Assembly (NCBI RefSeq): GCF_963676685.1
Contig: NC_092346.1
Coordinates: forward strand, 86,552,001 to 86,616,000
DNA length: 64,000 nt
DNA from: Mytilus edulis
Lineage: Eukaryota
Direction of reading: 5' to 3'
This document shows, piece after piece, positions 42,087 through 55,660 of the stretch (position 1 is its first letter; the number at the start of each line of letters is the position of its first letter). The notes below the pieces were generated by a model, which was not told the origin of the DNA, searched no databases, and worked only from the letters and a program-made list of their open reading frames with translations. Position numbers and translations under genes: made by a program.

Positions 42087-45000
42087 CTAAATATCAGCTT
42101 CTAATACCAAACACAACTTTGCGACTGGTCGTAATAATGTTGTTGAATATGTTTTTAGCCTCACTATACGAACATTGTCTGACTTGTCCTTTAGTACTTC
42201 AATGATTCTTCCTAAGTTCCAAAGATTCCTCGGTGTATTATCCTGGATCAATACAATGTCTCCTATTTTCAAGTTTCGCTTTTCAGAGTTCCACTTTTGC
42301 CTACTTTGTAATAAAGGCAAATACTCATGAGTCCATCTCTTCCAGAAAATGTCTGCTAGATATTGTATTTGTCGCCAACGTCTTCTTACGTAATTGTCTG
42401 TCTTACAAAAAGTTCCTGGAGGAAAGTATTCGCCAGGTCTTAATAAGAGAAGATGGTTCGGAGTAAGCACCTTTAAATCGTCTACGTGTTCAGATACTTC
42501 AGAAATCGGACGGTTATTCAAGATTGCTTCCACTTCACAAAACAATGTATTCAGATTTTCATCGTTCAATCGAAGACTCTGCTCTTGCATGACAGAATAT
42601 AACACCTTTCTTACTGATCTTATTAATCTCTCCCACACGCCTCCAAAGTGTGACGCGGCAGGAGGGTTGAATGCCCATTTTATACTTTTCTGAAGCATGA
42701 AATTATTTATCTTGTCTATGTTCCATCTTTCTATTTCTTCTCTCATTTCTCTTTCTGCTCCAACTAGATTTGTTCCGTTATCTGATCTTATGAATTCTGG
42801 CTTTCCTCTGCGAGATATCAAACGTCTGATTGCGTTTATACAAGAATCTGTATCCATAGAATGTGCGATTTCCAAGTGAACGGCACGAATGGAGAGACAT
42901 GTAAAGATAACCCCATATCGTTTCACTAAACTTCTTCCTTGTTTGATCTGAAACGGTCCAAAAAAGTCCATTCCAACCATCGTAAATGGTGGTTTATCGG
43001 ATATAAGTCTCTCCTTTGGTAAATTAGCCATTTTTTGGTCAACAAATGGTGCACAGTACTTCCTACAGATTACACATTTTGATACTATTCCTTTAATCAT
43101 AGAGCTAGCACCAATAATCCAAAATGTTTGCCTTAGTTGCGCCAGAATTGAGTTTTTACCCAAGTGTCCTACTGAACGGTGAATGTCTTCAATGATCAAC
43201 TTTGAAATGTTAGAGTCTTTCGGTAATAATATTGGATGTTTCGCATCATACGGTAAATCAGCACGCTCTAATCTTCCTCCTACTCTTAACAAACCATTCT
43301 CGTCTATAAATGGATTAAGTTTGAAGAGTTTAGATGACTTCTTTAACACTTTACCTCGGTCTATATTTTGAAGTACATGTATTTCTTCTTCAAAGTGAAC
43401 ACTTTGTTCATATTTAATGATAGCCATTTCTGATCTATTAAGAGTTTCAGTTGTCGGTAACGTGATCTGAACATCTTTCGTTACTCCGTTCAATGATTTT
43501 CTAACTGTTCGTTCATTCTGATTATCCACTGAGTTCTCACCTTCTGACTGACGTCTGTTTCTTATCTGTTTTCTTTCCTTAACAAGTTTCCTAAAGTTGT
43601 CCAACGCAATAAATAACCAACTAGTTATTTTCTTCAGTTTCTTCCATTCTGAGAATAGAGAGAACAGTCTATCTAATCCGTGATGTTCGCTTGACAATAT
43701 TGTAGTGTTAACGACTCGTTTCACTTCTTTATCTTCATCAATAATAGTCTTGTCTATGCGCCCTTCTGGCCATTCTATTTCTGGTTTCCAAAGATACTCT
43801 GGTCCATTGAACCAGTCTGGGTTTGATTCAAACTTTGAAACTGACATTCCCCTAGATGCATAATCGGCGGGATTAAGCTTTGTATTTATATACTTCCACT
43901 GATCAACAATTGTAGCTTCATGAATGATTTCTAAGCGGTTTGCAACGAAAGTGTGGAAACGTATATTCTGATTGCTGATATAGCGTAATACTGACATACT
44001 GTCTGTCCAAAAGAATGTTTTGTCTATGCTGTAGTTTAACTCCTCTAATATTACTTTACTTAGTTTTACTGCTCGTGTTGCGGCTGTAAGTTCCATCCTA
44101 GGTATAGTTACCTTTTTCAATGGTGCTACCCGAGACTTGCCGAGTACAAAAGAACAATGAATCATACCTTCATCATCAACAAGGCGTAAATAAAATACCA
44201 TTCCGTAGCCAATTTCACTAGCATCAGAAAAGCAATGAAGCTGAGATGAAACAACCTTTCCAAAGTTTTCAGGTTTATAGCACCTGTCTATTCTCACGTT
44301 CTCAAGGTCAGAAAGCTGATCTAACCAATCGTTCCATTTCTTTAAATCAGGTCCTGTAAGTTCTTTATCCCAACTAAACCCTTGTCTACACAAACCCTGT
44401 AGAATAGATTTCGCATTCAGCACGTACGGCGATATAATTCCTAAAGGATCGTATACTGAACTAGTGATTGAAAGAATACTTCTTCTAGTCGCTATCATTT
44501 CTTTGCACTTAATTCTGAATCCAAGAGTGTCAGTCTCTATAAACCATTGCACGCCTAATGCACGTTCAACCGGGAGGTCATCCTCAAGACTCCACTGCTT
44601 GACCTCTTTGGCACGCTCCTCCTCTGGTATCGATTTAATTACGAGTGGGCTGTTACTGATCCATTTTGTCATATGAAATCCACCCTTTTCACACAAAGAA
44701 GTCACGTTCTTTATCAACGATATTGCTTCAATGTCAGTCGATAATGACGAAAGACAATCATCAACATACATGCTCTTAGTTATTGTGTGTGCTACTTCTT
44801 TGTCGTAATGTTCACCGAAGTCTTCAGCTGTTCTTTTTAGCGCATAGTTACAGCAACTTGGTGATGATGTGGCACCGAACAAATGCACGGTCATTCTATA
44901 CTGTTCCGGTTCATTCTCCATGTTACCGTTTGGCCACCAAAAGAATCTTAAACAGTCTCTATCAAGTGGTGGCACTTTCACCTGGTGAAACATAGCTTCT

Positions 45001-48000
45001 ATATCTCCTAAAATTGCTACTTTCTCTTCACGGAATCTTATGAGAACACCTAGTAGGTTATTAGTGAGATCTGGTCCCTGTAAGAGTTGTTTATTCAGAG
45101 ACACACCCATATATGTAGCTGAACAGTCAAACACAATTCTAATTTTGTCTGGTTTCTGACTGTGGTAAACACCATGATGCGGGATATACCATACTCGTCC
45201 ATCGTTTCTGCTGAACTGTTCCTTTGGGACGTGTTCCATGTAACCTCTTTCTAACAGTTTGTCCATAAAATCAGTATAGTCCTGTTTGAATTTAGGATTC
45301 TTTATAAACTTGTTCTTAAGACTTCTCAATCGCTGCTGGCCCTGGGAAGCATTATTCGGCAGTTTCACATTGCTGTCACGGAAGGGTAGCGGAATGTAGT
45401 ACTGTCCCTTCTCAAAATGAATATTCTTATTCACATAATCTAAGAAAGAATTGTCGTCTACTGAGTTTTCTCTCTTGTCATCTATAATGCGTTCAGGAAA
45501 ATCAAAGTTCATAGATTTTTCAACTAACTCGTTAAGCCTTGAATGCTCTTCTTCATGAATCGCAGACATCTCTACTCGATTAACGACTTTATTAGTTCCT
45601 GTACATTCTCGTATCATGTTCCATATAATCCATCCCAATCTAGTGCGTGTGGCATGTGGGGATCCACTTGGTCCTGTTGCTACCTCAAATGGTGTGTAGG
45701 CATCTGGGACATTATTGCCTATCATAAGTCCAATACTAGCATCAAGGTTAGGCCATTTAATTCCCGACAAGTGACTCCATTTCGAGATTTCTTCTTGTTT
45801 CGGAATGTGATCCACTGAAACTGGCATCTCATCCTTTGTATAGACTCTTGGAAGTTCTACAACGTCATTCATTTCTAGGTCCAATACTTGTAATCCAGAA
45901 ACTGCATAAGTTGTCATCTTATACGGTTCACCCATGGTATTCAGTGTAATCTGCATTCTTTTACCATTTCCACCTAGCTTGTGCAACAGATTTTCTGTAC
46001 AGAATGATACGCTACTTCCTGAATCAAAAAATGCGTATGTCTCTACACAAGGTGCTTTATTCTTCAGTTTTACCCTTACTGGTATTATAGCCATTGCACA
46101 TGACATATCTCCAGCCCCTACTTGGCTGTTATTATCTGATAAATAGCTTGTGCACGCGCTAGTCTTGTTTTCCACTTCTGTCGAACTTTCACTCTGTTTC
46201 ATTGGTGTAACATCTCTTGGTACTTTGTCTTTGTCGTGAAGTAAAGTCGGATGTCTTTTGTTACAAATGAGGCATGTGGCTCTCATTTTACAGTTAACTG
46301 TCCTGTGTCCTATTTTGAGGCAACCAAAACAATGACCTTTGCTCTTTAAATGTTCATAACGGTTTCTAATACTCAAAGATAGTATGCTTTTGCAATCTTC
46401 TAATTTATGACAGTTTCCACAGTAGGTACATTTCAGTTCATTTACATGCTTATCATGTTCGTTTTTAACGTCTGTGGCAAAGCTCATTCTTTGAGTCTGT
46501 TTCGATTTGTTATCAGTCACATTTTTAGCCTTCTGGTCTCTTGTATTATTCTGTTTTGCAGAAACCGCTATATTACCATAAGTTGGGTCATTGGCCTTTT
46601 TAGCTTCCTGTTTAACAAACTGCACAAAATGTGTAAATGTTACTGACTCTTTCTTTTCCTTTGTTCGCATAACTACATTTCTCCATCGATCATGAAAGTA
46701 GAATGGTAATTTAATCATTAGTCGTTTAATGTTCTCGGAGTATTCCAGAATACGCATAGCTTCCATGCTTACAGCTGCATTTTCACATTCAATCAAAAAT
46801 AAAGAGAAATCATCAAGTGACTTTGAATCTCCAGCTTGTATGGTAGGCCACTCTAGTGCTCTTTTAATGAATGCATTTGCAATAACTTCTGTATCTCCGT
46901 ATCTTTCTTCTAACTGTTTGATTGCTGCACTATATGCATGTTCACCTATTAAATGGCTGAATCCACTTACTACTTTGCTTGCTTCGCCATATGTAAATTG
47001 TTCCAAATAAGTCATTTTCTCCTCCTCGTTATCTGTATTTGCAACTATTCTTGCTTGAAATTGTCTATAAAACTTTCTGTATTCTAAAGGGTTTCCTCCA
47101 AATTTCTTAATATCAGGTGTAGGTTTTCGTAAGTGTTTCACTACTGCAGACATACTATTTTCCGCTATATTGCTATTTTCCACTGTATTAGTCTGAATAT
47201 TGTTCATATTTTCATCATGTTTAATGCTGGATTTTACAGTCCTAATATGTTCATTTTTAGGTTCTTGCAAATGTGTGTTGTTTGAGGTAGATATAATTTT
47301 ATTGACCTGTAGGGCTTTAACTGGTCTAGTATCGAGTACTTCTTTTATCTCGTTCTTTGGTACAAACGGTTTTGCCATTACGTTATAATTCACAGCTGTT
47401 TTTTGTGCATTGTCAGATTTCTTTGGTTTTGATTGTACTTTCGAAACGTGAGTACTACATGTACTATTTGATTCAGATTCAAGATTTTCATACTTGTCTA
47501 ATAATTTTGTTTTTGCGTCTGCTATAGCTATATCAGTGTCAAGTTGCAATTCTTCTTCTTCTAATTTTAATTTTAACTTTGCTAACTCAATGTCTTTCTT
47601 TCTTTTAAGTGCTGCCAATTTTGTCTCTAATTCAACTCGTTTTTGTTCTTCTTTTAACCTTTGCGATGATAAACTTGATCTTGAAAGTGATGATCGTTTA
47701 CTAATTACACTTTTTGACCTCTGTGTTTGTTTATTTTCTTCGCGGATAGCGTTGAAATAATTTTCTATTGATCTCTTGATCTCACGTAAAGATTCATCTC
47801 TTTCTTGGAAAACCATCATATATGATTCTTTGTCTTCCTCATGACCTATCTTAGGCATAATGTTTTGGTGTTGTTCTAAGAACATCTCATATTTGTCCAT
47901 CCATATTGAATACTTCCCTTTGATTGTATCATATGGTGCTTTATCTGCTATTAGATCAATAATGTTTTCAGAAAGACGATTTAAGCCACCGTAACTATGG

Positions 48001-48221
48001 GCAAGCTTATCAAATTCGTATTGTTGTCCTTTTTCTGATAATGTTCTTGCTCTGGCACCATCTACATGTTCTGATTCCAAACTACATGTAGTCGTACTGG
48101 TCGTTTCTTCCGTTTCATTTGTGTCCTTTATATTTGCACTTTCTTCAATTACATTTGTGTCTATTATATTTGCACTTTCTTCATCTTTAGTAGCTTTGGT
48201 GTCGCTTTCTGTTAAATCCAT
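42087..48221 (-). CDS. BEL/Pao gag-pol polyprotein (Gag, three zinc knuckles, aspartic protease, RT, RNase H, integrase), 2044 aa
   Basis: Uninterrupted ORF with CFGCLKIGH, FFDSGS, WYIPHHGV, MYVDD, FSDAS, integrase HHCC and MDFFGP/SDNGTN/VWERLI. Confidence 0.96.
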   Translation of the reverse strand: MDLTESDTKATKDEESANIIDTNVIEESANIKDTNETEETTSTTTCSLESEHVDGARARTLSEKGQQYEFDKLAHSYGGLNRLSENIIDLIADKAPYDTIKGKYSIWMDKYEMFLEQHQNIMPKIGHEEDKESYMMVFQERDESLREIKRSIENYFNAIREENKQTQRSKSVISKRSSLSRSSLSSQRLKEEQKRVELETKLAALKRKKDIELAKLKLKLEEEELQLDTDIAIADAKTKLLDKYENLESESNSTCSTHVSKVQSKPKKSDNAQKTAVNYNVMAKPFVPKNEIKEVLDTRPVKALQVNKIISTSNNTHLQEPKNEHIRTVKSSIKHDENMNNIQTNTVENSNIAENSMSAVVKHLRKPTPDIKKFGGNPLEYRKFYRQFQARIVANTDNEEEKMTYLEQFTYGEASKVVSGFSHLIGEHAYSAAIKQLEERYGDTEVIANAFIKRALEWPTIQAGDSKSLDDFSLFLIECENAAVSMEAMRILEYSENIKRLMIKLPFYFHDRWRNVVMRTKEKKESVTFTHFVQFVKQEAKKANDPTYGNIAVSAKQNNTRDQKAKNVTDNKSKQTQRMSFATDVKNEHDKHVNELKCTYCGNCHKLEDCKSILSLSIRNRYEHLKSKGHCFGCLKIGHRTVNCKMRATCLICNKRHPTLLHDKDKVPRDVTPMKQSESSTEVENKTSACTSYLSDNNSQVGAGDMSCAMAIIPVRVKLKNKAPCVETYAFFDSGSSVSFCTENLLHKLGGNGKRMQITLNTMGEPYKMTTYAVSGLQVLDLEMNDVVELPRVYTKDEMPVSVDHIPKQEEISKWSHLSGIKWPNLDASIGLMIGNNVPDAYTPFEVATGPSGSPHATRTRLGWIIWNMIRECTGTNKVVNRVEMSAIHEEEHSRLNELVEKSMNFDFPERIIDDKRENSVDDNSFLDYVNKNIHFEKGQYYIPLPFRDSNVKLPNNASQGQQRLRSLKNKFIKNPKFKQDYTDFMDKLLERGYMEHVPKEQFSRNDGRVWYIPHHGVYHSQKPDKIRIVFDCSATYMGVSLNKQLLQGPDLTNNLLGVLIRFREEKVAILGDIEAMFHQVKVPPLDRDCLRFFWWPNGNMENEPEQYRMTVHLFGATSSPSCCNYALKRTAEDFGEHYDKEVAHTITKSMYVDDCLSSLSTDIEAISLIKNVTSLCEKGGFHMTKWISNSPLVIKSIPEEERAKEVKQWSLEDDLPVERALGVQWFIETDTLGFRIKCKEMIATRRSILSITSSVYDPLGIISPYVLNAKSILQGLCRQGFSWDKELTGPDLKKWNDWLDQLSDLENVRIDRCYKPENFGKVVSSQLHCFSDASEIGYGMVFYLRLVDDEGMIHCSFVLGKSRVAPLKKVTIPRMELTAATRAVKLSKVILEELNYSIDKTFFWTDSMSVLRYISNQNIRFHTFVANRLEIIHEATIVDQWKYINTKLNPADYASRGMSVSKFESNPDWFNGPEYLWKPEIEWPEGRIDKTIIDEDKEVKRVVNTTILSSEHHGLDRLFSLFSEWKKLKKITSWLFIALDNFRKLVKERKQIRNRRQSEGENSVDNQNERTVRKSLNGVTKDVQITLPTTETLNRSEMAIIKYEQSVHFEEEIHVLQNIDRGKVLKKSSKLFKLNPFIDENGLLRVGGRLERADLPYDAKHPILLPKDSNISKLIIEDIHRSVGHLGKNSILAQLRQTFWIIGASSMIKGIVSKCVICRKYCAPFVDQKMANLPKERLISDKPPFTMVGMDFFGPFQIKQGRSLVKRYGVIFTCLSIRAVHLEIAHSMDTDSCINAIRRLISRRGKPEFIRSDNGTNLVGAEREMREEIERWNIDKINNFMLQKSIKWAFNPPAASHFGGVWERLIRSVRKVLYSVMQEQSLRLNDENLNTLFCEVEAILNNRPISEVSEHVDDLKVLTPNHLLLLRPGEYFPPGTFCKTDNYVRRRWRQIQYLADIFWKRWTHEYLPLLQSRQKWNSEKRNLKIGDIVLIQDNTPRNLWNLGRIIEVLKDKSDNVRIVRLKTYSTTLLRPVAKLCLVLEADI

Positions 48222-48770: not shown

Positions 48771-50575
48771 GGGAGGAACTCCTGTTAAATCTTGATAATT
48801 CAATAACAGATGAAACGGTTGACTATGTTGTCCGCAAAACCTGCAAACAAAGCAGTTCAAAAATATGGTTTGATCACAGGATTGGACGCATAACTGCATC
48901 AGTGGCAAATGAATGTTCAAAAAAAGTTAATGAAAAAAATAACTCTGTTGTTGCGAAAATTTTCAATTATAAAAGTGCACCGGCTTATGTTAAATCCTTG
49001 AAATGGGGAAGAGAAAGAGAATTACCAGCAATAAAAGAATATGAAAAAAATGCAAAAGGCAAACACAAAGATTTCAATGTACAAAGCACAGGGCTTCACA
49101 TTTGCAAAGAAAATCCTTGGTTGGCAGCCACACCAGACAGTTTAATAATATGTGATTGTTGTGGTCTTGGATGTTTAGAAATTAAAAATCCTGAAAAATA
49201 TAAAAATGACACAATTCAACAAATGGCAACCTCAGACCAATCTTATTTAAATTATTCTGACAATAAACAAATCAGTCTTGACAAAAAACATCAATATTAT
49301 ACTCAAGTACAAATTCAGATGTATGCTACACATACTAAATATGCTGATTTTGTGGTAAAAACAGTTGCAGCAGATGACAACATTTTTATTCAAAGGATTG
49401 ACTATGATGAAATTTTTACCATGAATGTAATACATAAATGCAAAGTTTTTTTCACCAAAGTTATCGTTCAGGAATTGTTAACACATAAAGTAAAATTGTA
49501 CTATGAAAAACTTCAAAATAATGAACAAAACAGCGATCAAGTTTTCACAAATTCTAATTTAGAAATTAATGAAGTTGTCCAAGAAGTTGACACTGGCAGT
49601 GCTACTACATGTATGAATGAAGATAATACTGACATACATGTACCTTCTTCTAATCCAGCTGTTGTATGTCCAATCTGCAGCTGTGAATGTAAAGACGAGC
49701 CTTTGACTTTAAATGAAGAAAGTATTTGTTGCTCAAAATGTGACTTTTGGTTTCATTACCCATGTGTTGGAATAAAAGGGAATGAAAATGTTGTGAGGTC
49801 AAAATATAGAAATTGGTTTTGTAAGAGTTGCAAAGGCAAAAAATGATTTTTCTAAATATAAAGAATTTATATATATTTAATTATATATATTAATTTGTTA
49901 CAGGTTTACTGTACATTGTACACACTTTAATAATACAATGTAACACATGCAGGACTTTCAACAATATTTTTAGAAGGTAAAATGATAGGTGTACAAGTCA
50001 AAATACAAACAATTATATACAACTTCATGTATTTCTATCAATACATCATCCTTGTAAGTTGTGTTAGTATTGAAAAAAATAATTGAAAATGTGGGGAAAG
50101 GGAGATAATCTGAATCCACAATAAAAGTCATATTACTTCACACAGATTTTTTCAACTGGCTTTTCCAAACTTCTGTAAATTTGATTTTTTTTTAAATTTA
50201 AGACTTTTATTTTGTCTTGAAAAAATGTTCATTTCATTGAATATTTTCAAATTAAAAATTTGTGAAAGAACAATATGCTTTAAAAAAAATTGTTCATTGT
50301 TTTGTATTTCTTATTATTTTACACATTAAATTAGACATGTATTTGTTGCTGTCATATATAAACTGTACAGTGAATTAATAAAATTTTGCAGTAGTATATG
50401 AACATGAATGCAAATTATGGATAAAAATAACATGTGGTATGAGTGCCAAAGGCAATGAGACAATATCAAAGTCAAAATGCATTTAAATTTAGCAATTATA
50501 GCTCACAGTACGGCCTTTAACACAGAGCATTGGGCTGGCATGACTGATCATATAGATGTACTTCATAGCTATTCA

Positions 50576-52570
50576 TTACTCTGACTTATTATTTGTGTGT
50601 AGTGGTACCAACACACCAGACAGGTTTACCAGACAACCACATACAAAAACAATATTGTCAACTACATCACTTAAAATCAATGGAATTGGTCCTTGCAAGA
50701 TTTTAAAATCTTTCATTCGTCCAATAACACGCTCAACATGAATCCGAGCATTTGAAATTTCAGTATTGCTGATATTTTTGGATTCCCTAAACTGAATGTT
50801 TTTTCTTGCAAATGCTGGAATTATTAGTTCAACATCTCCTAGTAGAAAGTCATCTTTATTATTAAGCCCTTATCTGCCATAACTTTATCACCTTCTTCAA
50901 ATAAATCTAAAATGCCACATCTTCTAACAAGTTCAACATCTGACATGTCACCACCTGTTGCATGAGATACAAATGAGACTGTACCCCCTGGAGTACATGC
51001 AACTAAAACTTTGTATGTGTGTCTGGACTTGTAGTTAGAATATAAAGCAGAATTAGTGCTGTCCAAGGATGGCCTCTCTGTCTGTACCTCTGTGCAATCA
51101 ATAATTGCCGTTACTTTTCCGTATTTAGAATAACAATCAGGATAATATTGATCCAATTGATCCCGTGTTGGCCAATGAATAAGCGGTCTTAACTCTAGGG
51201 CAAGAAGAGAAATCCAAGTAGTGATAATTAATGAAACTAGTGAGCTAGAAACATTAAACAAAGAGGCCATAAATTCCTGGTTCAAATTTAACCTTAATTT
51301 CATTAGAGTCATCAACAGTTCATCTTCTAAGGATAATTTGCGCTTTGGTCCAGGCTTTTTAGCATTATTTTCTTGGTAACTTGTTGTCTCATGAGAATCC
51401 TCACCTTTGTAATACTTCATATTTGAAGCTGGTACACTAACTTCATCAAGTAACCAACAAAATAAAGAATATGACGCTAATCCTGTATGTAGCCTTATAA
51501 GATTATCCGAATGTTTAATGCTGATTATACCAAATGAATTTTTTTTTCAAGATCCTTAATTTTTTCTTTTGCACTGGAAAGCTGATGGTCTTTTTCAGCC
51601 AGCTGGATTTTCAGGAATTGTATTTCTGCACTCAGACTTTCTTTTGATATTTCATTCTCATCAATTATATCATCAGATATATTACATGTACTTGAATCCG
51701 TACATATATTTGTTGTCAGACTAACATTTTCCGAGTCTACAAGTTCTGAAAGTTTTTTCCTGCTTTTTGAAGCCACAGGTTTTGAATGCACTTCAGTGTT
51801 TCTCATTAGAAGCCGTCTAGGAGTTGTTATTTCATACCCTTTCATATGAAGTTTGGGATGTGGTGCTAACTCACGTGGCTGACCATATTCAAAATGATTT
51901 GAACACACTCGTGTATTTTTGTTCACTTCATAGTTGTCCCTGTTAAGTAATTTGCTCCACTTTTTGTACCATTCTTCTTTTGGACATTTGTGTAGCTTTA
52001 TTGATGCGTTTGAACCGAGATGTTCTTTCACATGGGGCATTACCAAAAACCTGAAAAAAGAAGGCTAAGTCAGGGTGGGGCCACTAAGCAATCTGCCCTC
52101 TTTGCAACCAGCTGATATTGATTAAAGCCTAGGGAAGGAATCGAACCTTCGTACCCTGACCAAGCCCTCTTATTTTTCAGAAATTTACAAATAAGTTTAG
52201 ATACAAATGTAAATATAGTTTATTTTTAAGGAAGAAACATGGGGATCCACGGTAACACATATAAGGAAACACTGAAATAAGTAAAAAAACGTTAGTTCTG
52301 ACGAATCTGTAAAATAATTTTTAGTCTGTGATTCCTTTACTAGCCAACGAAAAAGAACTATCAGCCAGAGTTATTCAGATCTATAGAAAACACAACCTCG
52401 AATCACACTTGAATTTCTTCTCATTTCTAAATGAAATTAAGTGTAATTTGCAACTCAATCTATCTCTAAATGTTTAATTACTTGAAATTAAAATATCATG
52501 CTTTATTATATTACCTGTCCTGCTGATCGTAATCATTATTGCATCCGTAAACTGCACACCTATGCGACAT
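50576..52570 (-). pseudogene. THAP + HTH + DDE_Tnp_4 (Harbinger/ISL2EU-type) transposase of element no.1, with two frameshifts
   Basis: Exon 52570-52515 (MSHRCAVYGC) splices to 52050 (..RVCSNHF). DDE triad IIDCTE / MADKG / HVERVIG. Frameshifts in an A-run near 51545 and near 50865; the first could be a homopolymer assembly error. Confidence 0.88.
52054..52167 (-). ncRNA. Putative structured small RNA (Y-RNA/YrlA-like permuted tRNA mimic) in the transposase intron
   Basis: 14-bp closing stem GGCTTGGTCAGGGT/ACCCTGACTTAGCC, perfect T-arm GAAGG-TTCGATT-CCTTC (B box), internal hairpin, A-box-like GCTTAGTGG downstream, then TTCTTTTTT. Folded by eye; expression unknown. Confidence 0.45.
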
Positions 52571-52601
52571 AGTTTTAGGCAAAATGGCGCTAGAGTAAAC
52601 A

Positions 52602-52623
52602 ACGCAAACTGTCCCACAATGCA
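52602..52623. promoter_or_regulatory. Subterminal inverted repeat containing a ZNF143/Staf-like motif, 32 bp upstream of the transposase ATG
   Basis: TCCCACAATGCA, with a YY1-like AAAATGGCG at 52581-52589. Confidence 0.5.
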
Positions 52624-52794
52624 TTTCGGCGTCAGCCATCAATGATCCATGAAGAGATCTATGGCTGGTGGTCACTAAAATAGTCGACTTTCATATTATA
52701 TTTGATGTAAGCGGTTATGCGTAACGTAAGCGGCCTACGTCACGTGATACCCGACAAGTTTTTTTCCGCGAAAATATAAACAAAGTAAAAAAGA

Positions 52795-55660
52795 ATGGTA
52801 AAACGTTGTGTTTGGGGAACCTGCAACAGCGATGACAGATATAAGCATAAACCTCATATGTCAGGAGTGGAATTCTTTCCTATACCTAAGCCTAAAACAA
52901 GATTGGAAGAAACTTTACAGTGGGTAAAAGCTTGTGGCAGGAAAGATTACGCCGTATCCAATGTAAACAAACATGCCTATGTGTGCAGCAAGCACTTTGT
53001 TGATGGGAGACCTACCACCCAACATCCATACCCAATCATGGCTACCCCTTTAAAGCAAACTGTGCACAAATCCAGGAAACTTCCGTTTGACAGAGCCACT
53101 GTACATATCAAAGCCAGCATAACCACGCCCACTACCAGTAAAATTGTCGATCAAGTATGGAGGGATGTTGGGGCGTATGTAACTTTAAATGGATCCAACA
53201 CATCAAAAGACCAACCTCTTCAGGCAACACCACATTTCTGTGAAGAACTTAAAGGTAATGACAGGTATAATATATATATGAAATGACAAGGCATTGACCG
53301 ATAATAAGTAATCAAACTCCGAAAAGGGGGGGGGGTGAATTCCAAGTATCATGCGCCTCTAAATTGATGTATGTGTATGCTGTCCACTTGCTCTGTTTCT
53401 TAATAATGTCTGATGACTTATTATGTCTGAATCATTTAATCAATGTTGTATACCTGCTGTGCCTTACAGATGCTGCATTGGACTACCCTATCAGTAATCA
53501 TCTAATGTTTTATGTGCATATATCCACCTATATAGTATATGTCCATATTTTTCTACAAAATATATGTCATCAGTACATTCTAAGTCTTTTGCTCAATATT
53601 AGTTGGTTTACAAATAATTTTGAAAATTGAAAATCAACCAAGTCATGCAATATATATTGAATCTTGATGTTTCAGTGGATGCAGACCATACTTACTATGC
53701 TGTAAAGAGGGGATTTCATGTACAAACTACAAGTATATCTACACAAACAGACATTACCATGGCAGAAATGGATTCTCTGACCGATAATATGATGGACACT
53801 GGTAGCATGAAGAGAAAGAATCTCATGAATGACATTATGAAAGACAACAAATCCTGCAAATTCTATACAGGTACATGTAACTTAAATTTTTAAAGATTTA
53901 AAAATGTATGGAAGCTTGATGGTATTTTATGCACATTTATAAATGGGTAATAAATTACAAATTACATTTATTCTGTATATTAACCATGAAAATAAATTAT
54001 CACCCGACCACAAAAGGCTGAATTCATTTTGCCTATGGGTCAAATTGTCTAGACTAAGTGTGCTTGACACAGTACATGCAGGTGGTATTGTTTCAATTTC
54101 TTTAAAGTTTGAGATTAAATCCTATCTGGAGACAAAAAATATAATTTGATTGCTCAAATTTGCCTTTTTTAAATTGTTGTGTCAATATTTAGACGCTTTA
54201 CCATGAGAAATAAGTATATACATTTTGTTTTCTTCATTCAAGGTGTATCACTGGCAGTATTTTGTTTCATCCTAAATTTCCTGAGGAAAAAGGCTTCATC
54301 CATGGTGTACTGGAACAGTGCAGATACATCCGAAAGGGAAAATTCTGAGGTAGAAGATATATTAAGAGGTTTATACTTTTTATTGTGTCCTTTAGCATGT
54401 TTAGTATACCAGAAAAAGCAGACGACAAAATTTTTGTTCACTTGTGTACATGTACATGTATTTATAATGTAATGTCAGTACCTTAAATCTGTTATCCAAA
54501 TACATAAAACAAAATTAATATAAGAACAGTGTAAATGGTGAAAGTATTAGGACAGTTTCTGCTTGATATTCTGGAGCATCTAGCTACATTTGTTGTAATG
54601 TCATTTGAGTTTTTAAATTTTCACCATGGAAAAACTTCGAAGTCAATGAACCAATTTTTGCATGCCTCGAGGTGCAGGTACAATGTGTAATGTTTTTCAG
54701 TCTGTGCGTATGTTTGTTCAATATTGAATTGTTTGCCAAATTGATGTTTTGACCCGGATTTCGTGTTCCACCTATTTAACATTGAAAAATGACAGCACAA
54801 GTCTCAATAACAATTGATGGTAACTGAAAACATGACTCTAGAATCAATATAGGTTTCAGATTATATGAAGAATATGCATCATCATTTATTTATTTCAGAC
54901 ACCTCGCAAAGGACCGAGAAGAATATTAGACATAAAGGAGGAATTAGCACTCACTTTGTTAAGACTAAGAAGAGGATTCGATACCAAAACTCTTGGGGAC
55001 ATGTTTGCTATATCAGAAAGCTCTGTGTGTAGAATATTTACTACTTGGCTAAATCTAATGTATCATGATTTGAAGTTTTTGGTCAGATGGCCTTCAAGAG
55101 AACAAGTTCTTAAAAAAATGCCAAAATGTTTCAAACACTTTAAGAAAACAAAATGTATTATTGATTGCACAGATTTTTTTGTACAAAAACCTAGTCTGCC
55201 ATCAGCTCAGCGAATTACATATTCTAGTTACAAACATCACAACACTTTTAAGTGTCTTGTTGGGATCACACCCAGAGGTTCATTTAGTTTTATATCCGAC
55301 TTATTTACTGGTAGCATATCTGATCGTAAAATTGTACAAGATTCTGGCTTCCTACAGAAAGTTGAGTATGGTGATGATATAATGGCAGATAGAGGCTTCC
55401 TTATTCGAGGTGACTTAGCGCTTAAAGGAGCAACTTTAAATATCCCCCCTTTCTCAATGGGAAAGCAGATGTGTGCAAATGCAACTACAAAGACACGCAG
55501 AATTGCACGTGCAAGAATTCATGTGGAAAGGGCAATAGGAAGACTGAAGAACTTTACACTTTTACAGAGAACTATTCCACTGAGAATGAAACATACATTT
55601 AATCAAGTTGTAAAAGTGTGTGCCATTTTGTGCAATCTGGACAGTCAGTTGGTTAAATAA
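52795..55660 (+). CDS. THAP + HTH + DDE_Tnp_4 transposase of ISL2EU unit no.2, 4 exons, 507 aa, apparently intact
   Basis: Exons 52795-53254, 53676-53870, 54243-54349 and 54899-55660 total 1524 nt in frame. THAP MVKRCVWGTC..VCSKHF, DHTY motif, triad IIDCTD / MADRGF / HVERAIG. Confidence 0.87.

Follow-up and report, generated by a model that had tools for sequence, protein, structure and literature searches.

A dispersed module predicted to fold with tRNA proportions in a transposase intron and behind the 28S rRNA genes of Mytilus edulis

The transposase intron and its island

On the minus strand of a 64,000-nt stretch of the Mytilus edulis genome (RefSeq assembly GCF_963676685.1, contig NC_092346.1, positions 86,552,001 to 86,616,000; hereafter the window) lies a transposase gene whose intron carries a GC-rich island immediately before the 3' splice site. 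An earlier note on this DNA read the island as a circularly permuted tRNA mimic of the Y RNA/YrlA kind. The features on which that note relied, namely the GC-rich island, its paired ends, a perfect T-arm and a run of T ahead of the 3' splice site, were all found at 52170-52051 (-), where the letters of the window give the same sequence. Our own reading differs: the island is probably a passenger copy of a dispersed, tRNA-derived structured module of about 112 nt, residing in the intron of a THAP-DDE transposon of the ISL2EU type. Other copies of the module are found in unrelated repeats and in the ribosomal DNA (rDNA), behind the gene for the 28S rRNA.

By its Pfam matches the host gene is ISL2EU-like, combining a THAP plus DDE_Tnp_4 transposase with an adjacent YqaJ gene. 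Such a transposase with a neighboring YqaJ nuclease gene defines the ISL2EU superfamily in Repbase. The parts of the locus are the following (ORF, open reading frame).

52515-52570 (-): coding part of exon 1; ATG at 52570, start of the THAP C-X2-C motif; ends AG/GTAATA
52051-52514 (-): intron of the THAP-DDE transposase gene, 464 nt; GT at 52514, AG at 52051
52051-52059 (-): T6 run plus CAG, polypyrimidine tract and 3' splice site; T6 at 52059-52054, CAG at 52053-52051, exon 2 from 52050
51525-52050 (-): exon 2, rest of the THAP domain and linker; Pfam THAP, E 1.6e-6
50839-51420 (-): transposase ORF piece with HTH_Tnp_4 and DDE_Tnp_4; Pfam E 3.4e-21 and 3.8e-16
48902-49846 (+): ORF with YqaJ and PHD (Pfam)

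On sequence grounds the intron is genuine. The reading frame, followed by eye, is preserved over the join of the two exons, which were searched separately against Pfam; the exon-2 ORF covers only positions 15-60 of the THAP profile, so that exon 1 must supply the beginning of the domain. GC content is 0.46-0.47 across the island versus 0.23-0.34 in the rest of the intron.

The module spans 52170-52054 (-). Its ends pair as an 18-bp closing stem, here called S (52170-52153 with 52076-52059), which has one T.T mismatch, some G.U pairs and no bulge. Two further helices, a and b, lie within. Read along the minus strand, the parts are:

52153-52170 (-): 5' strand of stem S, AGAGGGCTTGGTCAGGGT; pairs with 52076-52059
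52151-52152 (-): junction AC, 2 nt from stem S to the T-arm; A invariant, second base C or T in most of 27 members
52134-52150 (-): T-arm GAAGG/TTCGATT/CCTTC, with B-box-like GGTTCGATTCC; stem perfect, loop nearly invariant in 27 sequences
52127-52132 (-): helix a, 3'-acceptor-like strand CTAGGC; preceded by C 52133, pairs with GCTTAG 52089-52084
52113-52126 (-): variable AT-rich linker TTTAATCAATATCA; 14 to about 32 nt, sequence varying between subfamilies
52100-52112 (-): conserved single-stranded block GCTGG(T)TGCAAAG; TGCAAAG invariant and GCTGG nearly so in 27 sequences
52095-52098 (-): helix b, 5' strand GGGC, D-stem-like; pairs with GCCC 52081-52078
52084-52089 (-): helix a, 5'-acceptor-like strand GCTTAG; inside the 'A box' of the earlier note
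52078-52081 (-): helix b, 3' strand GCCC; TG 52083-52082 before it, C 52077 after it
52059-52076 (-): 3' strand of stem S, ACCCTGACTTAGCCTTCT; pairs with 52170-52153

Folded as a single sequence, the island yields -42.4 kcal/mol and a z score of -2.47, with 4 of 200 shuffles equal or better. Taken alone, this predicted fold is suggestive and modest, not compelling; it is the evidence from the family that marks the island as more than a chance fold. As read from the sequence, the stem of the window copy could be extended by a CTG...CAG pairing that buries the T run and the AG.

Covariation within the module family

Structure counts were made on 27 distinct aligned family sequences, and a count on 22 sequences agrees with them. 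Standard pairs occupy 90.1% of 890 cells, versus 77.5% in shuffles (none of 500 reaches the observed figure), and sliding the partners by 1-3 columns drops the paired cells to 38-50%. Both sides have changed in 22 of 33 pairs; stem S contributes 16 of its 18 pairs, the T-arm 2 of 5, helix a 2 of 6 and helix b 2 of 4. Pairs 2 and 3 of the T stem covary (UA/AU and GC/AU). Helix a, in which CTAGGC, one base past the T-arm, pairs with GCYTAG, has 97.5% of its cells paired and occurs as CTAGGC:GCCTAG, CTAAGC:GCTTAG, CTAGAC:GTCTAG and CTGAGC:GCTCAG; it measures 6 bp, or 7 if the adjoining C52133 and G52082, both invariant, pair around a bulged T. Helix b appears as TGGC:GCCA (loci L088 and L091) and GGGT:ACCC (L093) beside GGGC:GCCC. 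Since helices a and b interleave, the two make a pseudoknot.

The core is conserved across subfamilies, with GGTTC.ATTCC, TGCAAAG and the junction bases among its invariant features, and no pairing partner for the GCTGG(T)TGCAAAG block was found in the 27-sequence alignment. The closing stem, in contrast, has wholly different sequences in different subfamilies (TTGGTCAGGGT, AGAGTTGGTGT, GATCTACGT, TTGGCGT, GGTCTATGT, AGTTCATGT, GGGCTATGT and CAGCAGTGT), each pairing with its own partner strand over 7 to at least 18 bp; because stem lengths differ, the outer 7 stem pairs are often unpaired in the alignment. Non-Watson-Crick cells comprise 60 G.U versus 17 A.C out of 725, an excess which suggests that the strand in the sense of the T-arm is the one that folds. 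Individual members fold with z scores between -2.4 and -4.6 in seven of eight cases, the eighth, L086, having a z of 0.04.

The proportions are those of tRNA. A T stem of 5 bp and helix a of 6-7 bp would form an acceptor/T stack of about 12 bp; the 4-bp helix b stands at the place of the D stem and is followed, after 1 nt, by the long stem S at the place of the anticodon stem. The wiring is unlike that of tRNA: the loop of the D-like arm contains the acceptor-like 5' strand, a linker of 35-55 nt closes the acceptor end, and the B-box-like motif precedes the A-box-like one by about 55 nt. As judged from aligned copies, the compensatory changes show the module to be maintained as a four-helix, tRNA-proportioned pseudoknot, two helices of which are new relative to the earlier note. 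The T-arm strand would fold as RNA into a closed L-shape with no free acceptor ends.

The permuted tRNA mimic proposed for the island survives in part. Covariation backs a T-arm that comes first and a molecule opened at the 'anticodon' stem, but the wiring is another one, with a pseudoknotted acceptor-like helix. The loop-closed acceptor hairpin imagined in the earlier note (CCT/AGG, CTTT/AAAG, AATCA/TGGTT) is 62.4% paired across the 27 members versus 61.6% in shuffles, 106 of 500 of which are as good. Nor is the presumed D-loop, the A-box-like GCTTAGTGG, a D-loop; its GCTTAG is the 5' strand of helix a and covaries with CTAGGC.

Copies in mobile elements and behind the 28S rRNA gene

A DNA search of the mussel's own 1.37-Gb genome with the intron island gave 290 candidates, of which 40 were scored. 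Among these 40, five copies, the window's own and four more, are 100% identical over 117 nt and all share the same transposon context, L006 and L007 match at 92% with flanks unrelated to the transposon, L008 (90%) lies inside a decayed copy of the same transposon, L012 (84%) is a truncated copy, and 31 rows agree at 83-88% across 73-87 nt of the interior. From 19 distinct copies a covariance model was made, which produced 150 full-length genome matches, 67 of them with one identical score. Counted by exact pattern, the main subfamily has 141 copies and the longer-linker form 80, about 220 or more in total; two patterns that exclude the main subfamily matched 15 and 25 times, the 25 overlapping the other sets. 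Reversed-pattern controls in this genome gave no match every time. By these counts of sequence matches, the size of the family is in the hundreds, not thousands. The pattern matched nothing in the metagenome contigs of the Joint Genome Institute or in 185,579 prokaryotic genomes.

Reading of the flanks distinguishes at least a dozen contexts. Between the intron copy and L006/L007 the stem-bounded unit alone is held in common, 108 nt at 92%. The main subfamily sits in composite non-coding repeats with a common core of about 300 bp, the module being internal to its hosts. Part of the subfamily is housed by one such host, a sharply bounded non-coding element some 1.5 kb long (L015:269-1789, with nine sister loci). 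Its 3' end ...CAGCTATAGG (...CTATAGG) abuts TTAA in each of the 10 copies aligned, and the element may be non-autonomous and piggyBac-like. Further members reside in unrelated repeats or in sequence found just two or three times. No target-site duplication was identified at the copies, some of which are followed by A runs, and flank searches at three contexts (L009, L010 and L006) uncovered no empty sites. A derivation of the main-family host repeat from ISL2EU was rejected, as the repeat has nothing of the transposon besides the module. Among the intron copy, the main family and the spacer of the rDNA, BLAST carries the likeness 45 nt farther upstream (74% overall), a figure on which we do not rely; a leader or trailer shared by the three was discarded because the multiple alignment is unconvincing in this AT-rich stretch.

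Some copies are arranged in ways that deserve mention in their own right. On contig C11, two diverged modules lie 1.1-1.6 kb apart in the same orientation at three places (27993405/27994502, 30843634/30844735 and 51423829/51425452; L094, L095). Their stems differ, a palindromic insert interrupts the linker, and the whole looks like a two-module composite repeat; the paired modules are not a pair of long terminal repeats (LTRs), because they are consistently different from each other. In L046 and L060, two main-family copies, the leader is interrupted some 60-100 nt before the module by a TATA-flanked palindromic insert of about 38 nt, which is probably a very small inverted-repeat element nested there. 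At L042, a search for ORFs, tandem repeats and inverted repeats gave nothing telling.

The long-linker copies lead to the rDNA. Of their 80 matches, 60 form tandem arrays that repeat every 13-17 kb; 30 unplaced contigs carry 57 of them, and the other 3 stand at the beginning of contig C8. These arrays are rDNA, since the 18S gene co-occurs on them, and it lies on the strand of the module in all eight contigs that list both. In L104 the 28S model ends at 844 and the module occupies 1147-1263 (contig C1630:10846-10962), that is, 303 nt behind the 28S and on the rRNA strand, with two long T runs before it and 115-nt spacer subrepeats after it. There is one module per rDNA unit, behind every 28S gene. 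In these copies the linker after CCCTAGGC is a run of T6-T10 whose length varies between units, so a full-length RNA from there cannot be a product of RNA polymerase III (Pol III). Spacer and main family have the unit alone in common (113 nt, 85-87%). When the spacer is compared by BLAST with all loci, homology to the dispersed copies breaks off no more than a few nucleotides from the stem's 3' foot. On the 5' side the limit is not constant, falling at 1080 (L103), 1122 (L100) and 1146-1149 (main family). Loci L100 (C5:44.34 Mb), L102 (C8:0.24 Mb) and L103 (C9:51.88 Mb) carry 25-67 nt of upstream spacer sequence, L102 with an 85-nt deletion relative to the spacer; these three are possibly fragments derived from rDNA.

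The transposon lineage was searched with an 851-nt query across exon 1, intron and exon 2. Besides fragments, this retrieved five near-identical copies (98-100%), all contiguous through the module, and L008, which matches at 91% from 33 nt upstream of the module through exon 2; no copy of the lineage without the module was found in the genome. The module might then be thought to work for the transposon, either as an RNA that is released from within the intron and partners the transposase or the YqaJ nuclease, or as a structure controlling the 3' splice site. Its presence in all sampled copies with this exon-2 boundary (the five and L008) would fit such a role, as would its position directly against the 3' splice site on the gene's own strand and the extended pairing that, on our reading of the window copy, reaches the CAG. 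We nevertheless consider this quite unlikely. The five copies agree, but at 98-100% identity this tells nothing of selection. By reading of the sequence, the older L008 has not preserved the extended CTG...CAG-type pairing, and it bears disruptive changes in helices a and b as well as in the GCTGG block, in the manner of neutral decay. The window holds a second THAP plus HTH_Tnp_4 plus DDE_Tnp_4 unit at 52795-55660 (+), head to head with the first and with its THAP domain unsplit, which lacks the module: the covariance model has a single match in the whole 64 kb, the intron copy, in agreement with the earlier note, which had seen no equivalent there. Moreover, the module occurs in many unrelated repeats and in rDNA, and no spliced or small RNA was seen, although that test is a weak one (see below).

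The idea that the element carries a third, RNA component is unsupported, because the module is dispersed in unrelated contexts and in the rDNA spacer and is absent from the second unit. A deflationary outcome had been foreseen as well, in which the segment would prove a dispersed repeat fragment missing from other copies of the element and devoid of covariation. Of these points only the dispersal is borne out: every sampled copy of the lineage has the segment, and it does covary. Beside the YqaJ gene, the window also contains a 2044-aa ORF (42087-48221, minus strand) that by eye is gag-pol-like, with the protease, reverse transcriptase and integrase motifs of an LTR retrotransposon.

The dispersal raises the question of a plain DNA-level MITE (miniature inverted-repeat transposable element), where stem S would be the terminal inverted repeat and the interior an inert tRNA-derived relic with no function as RNA. 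A stem-bounded unit common to unrelated contexts is what such an element would leave; longer interrupted inverted repeats surround L086, L087 and L093, and one host of the main family, with its sharp ends by TTAA, looks like a DNA transposon. The pattern of conservation, however, is the reverse of that of a MITE, since the ends differ wholly in sequence and in length (7 to at least 18 bp) and the interior is conserved. Binding of a transposase at the ends does not explain why helices a and b and the T stem covary, the surplus of G.U over A.C implies that one strand folds, and target-site duplications were not identified. We regard the MITE explanation as unlikely.

Relatives of the module and its possible role

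At gathering score, Rfam has no family in the window; ARAGORN reports no tRNA or transfer-messenger RNA (tmRNA) gene there and none in 25 module-holding loci. These two checks, which the earlier note had proposed, thus returned neither a known family nor a tRNA gene. No Y_RNA match appeared at E up to 10 on 51900-52350, nor at E up to 5 on eight divergent members. The T-arm alone touches Rfam, where tmRNA and plastid models score 11-13 bits, far below threshold, and the same holds in eight relatives.

The terminal stem of Y RNAs is a conserved Ro60-binding helix with a bulged C, and in YrlA, whose gene stands beside rsr, the stem that binds Ro carries a tRNA-like domain of simple permuted order (T-arm, loop-closed acceptor hairpin, D-arm). 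The bacterial YrlA/Y RNAs resemble the module in that the ends form a long stem below a tRNA-like top, with the T-arm first and the stem at the 'anticodon' position. Were the module of this type, Pol III would make it as a small RNA, with Ro60 bound at the stem and a nuclease recruited by the tRNA-like part. The paired ends and leading T-arm are in keeping with this, and so is the U run that follows the stem in the intron subfamily and its nearest relatives (L006/L007, L008 and L086). In the main and rDNA subfamilies, however, the stem is not followed by a T run, and in the rDNA copies such a run stands within the module. The stem is free to vary and is unconserved between subfamilies, a Ro60 helix and the bulged C are absent, the loop-closed acceptor hairpin of YrlA is unsupported, and the acceptor-like helix forms a pseudoknot with the D-like arm, in contrast to the simple permuted layout of YrlA. 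The module is also eukaryotic and multi-copy, set in repeats and in an rDNA spacer, and it matches no Rfam model. The identification with Y RNA, YrlA or a Ro60 ligand was therefore given up; we hold it to be very improbable.

Circularly permuted tRNA genes of red and green algae are similar in having the 3' half upstream of a part like the 5' half, and in having ends that pair. After permutation such genes have complementary acceptor strands in a normal cloverleaf, and a bulge-helix-bulge at the paired ends. The module has neither feature. CCTAGGC finds no complement in the strand that lies upstream of the D-like stem, which speaks against a circularly permuted tRNA gene; the stems are continuous, with no bulge-helix-bulge and no anticodon loop, which speaks also against a substrate of the tRNA-splicing endonuclease. 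A Pol III unit was rejected on three grounds: the order of B before A is wrong for a type-2 promoter, T5-T6 occurs in the main-family leader, and T6-T10 lies inside the rDNA copies. On inspection, no upstream element is common to the contexts. Self-cleaving ribozymes (hammerhead, twister and those like hepatitis delta virus) were set aside as well, no such Rfam family being found and GCTGGTGCAAAG misfitting, by eye, the hammerhead core.

The tRNA-like structures at the 3' ends of plant viral RNAs, of the turnip yellow mosaic virus type, provide a parallel for the fold: there, too, the acceptor helix is made from the strand adjacent to the T-arm and a distant loop. They have a free, aminoacylated CCA 3' end, whereas in the module the 35-55-nt linker closes the acceptor end and the setting is animal genomic DNA. 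For the situation in rDNA, analogies can be drawn with the mascRNA of MALAT1 and with the tRNA 'punctuation' of organelle and bacterial rRNA operons, which are cases of a tRNA fold inside longer transcripts, such as those of Pol I or Pol II. The rDNA module lies just behind the large-subunit rRNA gene, on the transcribed strand. The mascRNA and the 'punctuation' tRNAs are ordinary cloverleaves visible to tRNA finders; the module is invisible to ARAGORN.

Bivalve genomes are also home to dispersed elements with tRNA-like parts. The tRNA-derived short interspersed nuclear elements (SINEs) of bivalves and the Helenus TRIMs (terminal-repeat retrotransposons in miniature) keep a B-box-like GGTTC of tRNA origin (PMC11481361, PMC10886601). 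Helenus TRIMs, present in Mytilida too, have tRNA-like LTRs in the normal order of A then B (PMC10886601). SINEs and Helenus place the A box before the B box and are largely seen by tRNA predictors or by inspection of the boxes; the module has the reversed order, its 'A box' is a helix strand, and it shows no LTR pair and no established tail. A SINE of tRNA origin was dismissed because the B-like motif precedes the A-like one, the module is internal to host repeats and no target-site duplications were found; the reversed order likewise excludes a TRIM of the Helenus kind. Literature searches with words and with two sequence strings found no description of the module, though supplementary repeat libraries may name it, and the family looks undescribed.

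The reading that we prefer, that of a passenger copy, supposes that the module reached the transposase intron as a discrete stem-bounded unit and was then carried passively, its pyrimidine run now serving as the tract before the 3' splice site. Selection would have worked not on the copy in the intron but on source copies of the family, with the one in the rDNA spacer as a candidate. That an RNA fold was selected in those source copies is indicated by an interior that is conserved, a stem that varies freely yet stays paired, internal helices that covary and a surplus of G.U. Since copying involves the stem-bounded unit, with a 3' limit that is fixed, an RNA whose end lies at the foot of stem S is suggested, and this RNA may be what was copied. 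Its likeliest action would be that of a tRNA-like processing or 3'-end mark within longer transcripts of Pol I or Pol II, read perhaps, to venture a guess, by enzymes that recognize the shape of tRNA, such as RNase P and RNase Z.

Several observations weigh against this interpretation or temper it. Insertion into the intron is inferred rather than shown, because neither an empty site nor a target-site duplication was identified. The search covers one genome, and transfer may have run from rDNA to transposons or the other way. The covariation cells are not independent events, many rows being copies within one subfamily, and the structure was derived from the same sequences on which it was scored, which favors it over the slid controls. 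The inverted-repeat ends of a DNA element would also preserve the pairing of S, though not that of helices a and b. Finally, the RNA data reveal neither splicing nor a discrete transcript. In raw run X24, of which about 18 in 100 were read, five reads fall in the region, all at 50700-50753, with none on 50774-52900; contigs from two runs, of uncertain kind and perhaps DNA, cross exon 2, the module and the intron unspliced and without joints. Raw run X21 (about 6 in 100 read) had no reads and counts as no test. These are ordinary RNA-seq runs, which capture small RNAs poorly and have low power for a non-polyadenylated RNA or a silent transposon, so that the test is weak.

One could go further and envision, as a tentative proposal that we deem possible but not probable, a new class of closed, pseudoknotted, tRNA-shaped RNA that marks a cut in Pol I read-through transcripts. 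In this scheme the rDNA copy would be the working one; RNase P, RNase Z, or RNase III acting at the long stem would be the cutters; and the excised, stem-bounded RNA would occasionally be copied back into the genome, seeding the copies in transposons and in the intron described here.

For ISL2EU elements, these results remove an attractive idea, as there is no sign of a Y-RNA-like third component. They also carry a warning for annotation: tRNA finders and Rfam overlook this family, and its B-box-like motif invites over-reading. For RNA biology, the family offers a covariation-supported fold that has the proportions of tRNA with other strand wiring and no free ends; its position behind the 28S gene is fixed, and several mobile elements have spread it. 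If the module were cut by tRNA-processing enzymes, it would provide a handle on rRNA 3' ends and Pol I termination in molluscs, a setting that to our knowledge is not well understood, and an example of mobile elements and introns acquiring a ready-made processing signal. If the rDNA copy does mark a cut in Pol I read-through transcripts, the module would be a nuclear animal counterpart of the tRNA 'punctuation' in prokaryotic rRNA operons.

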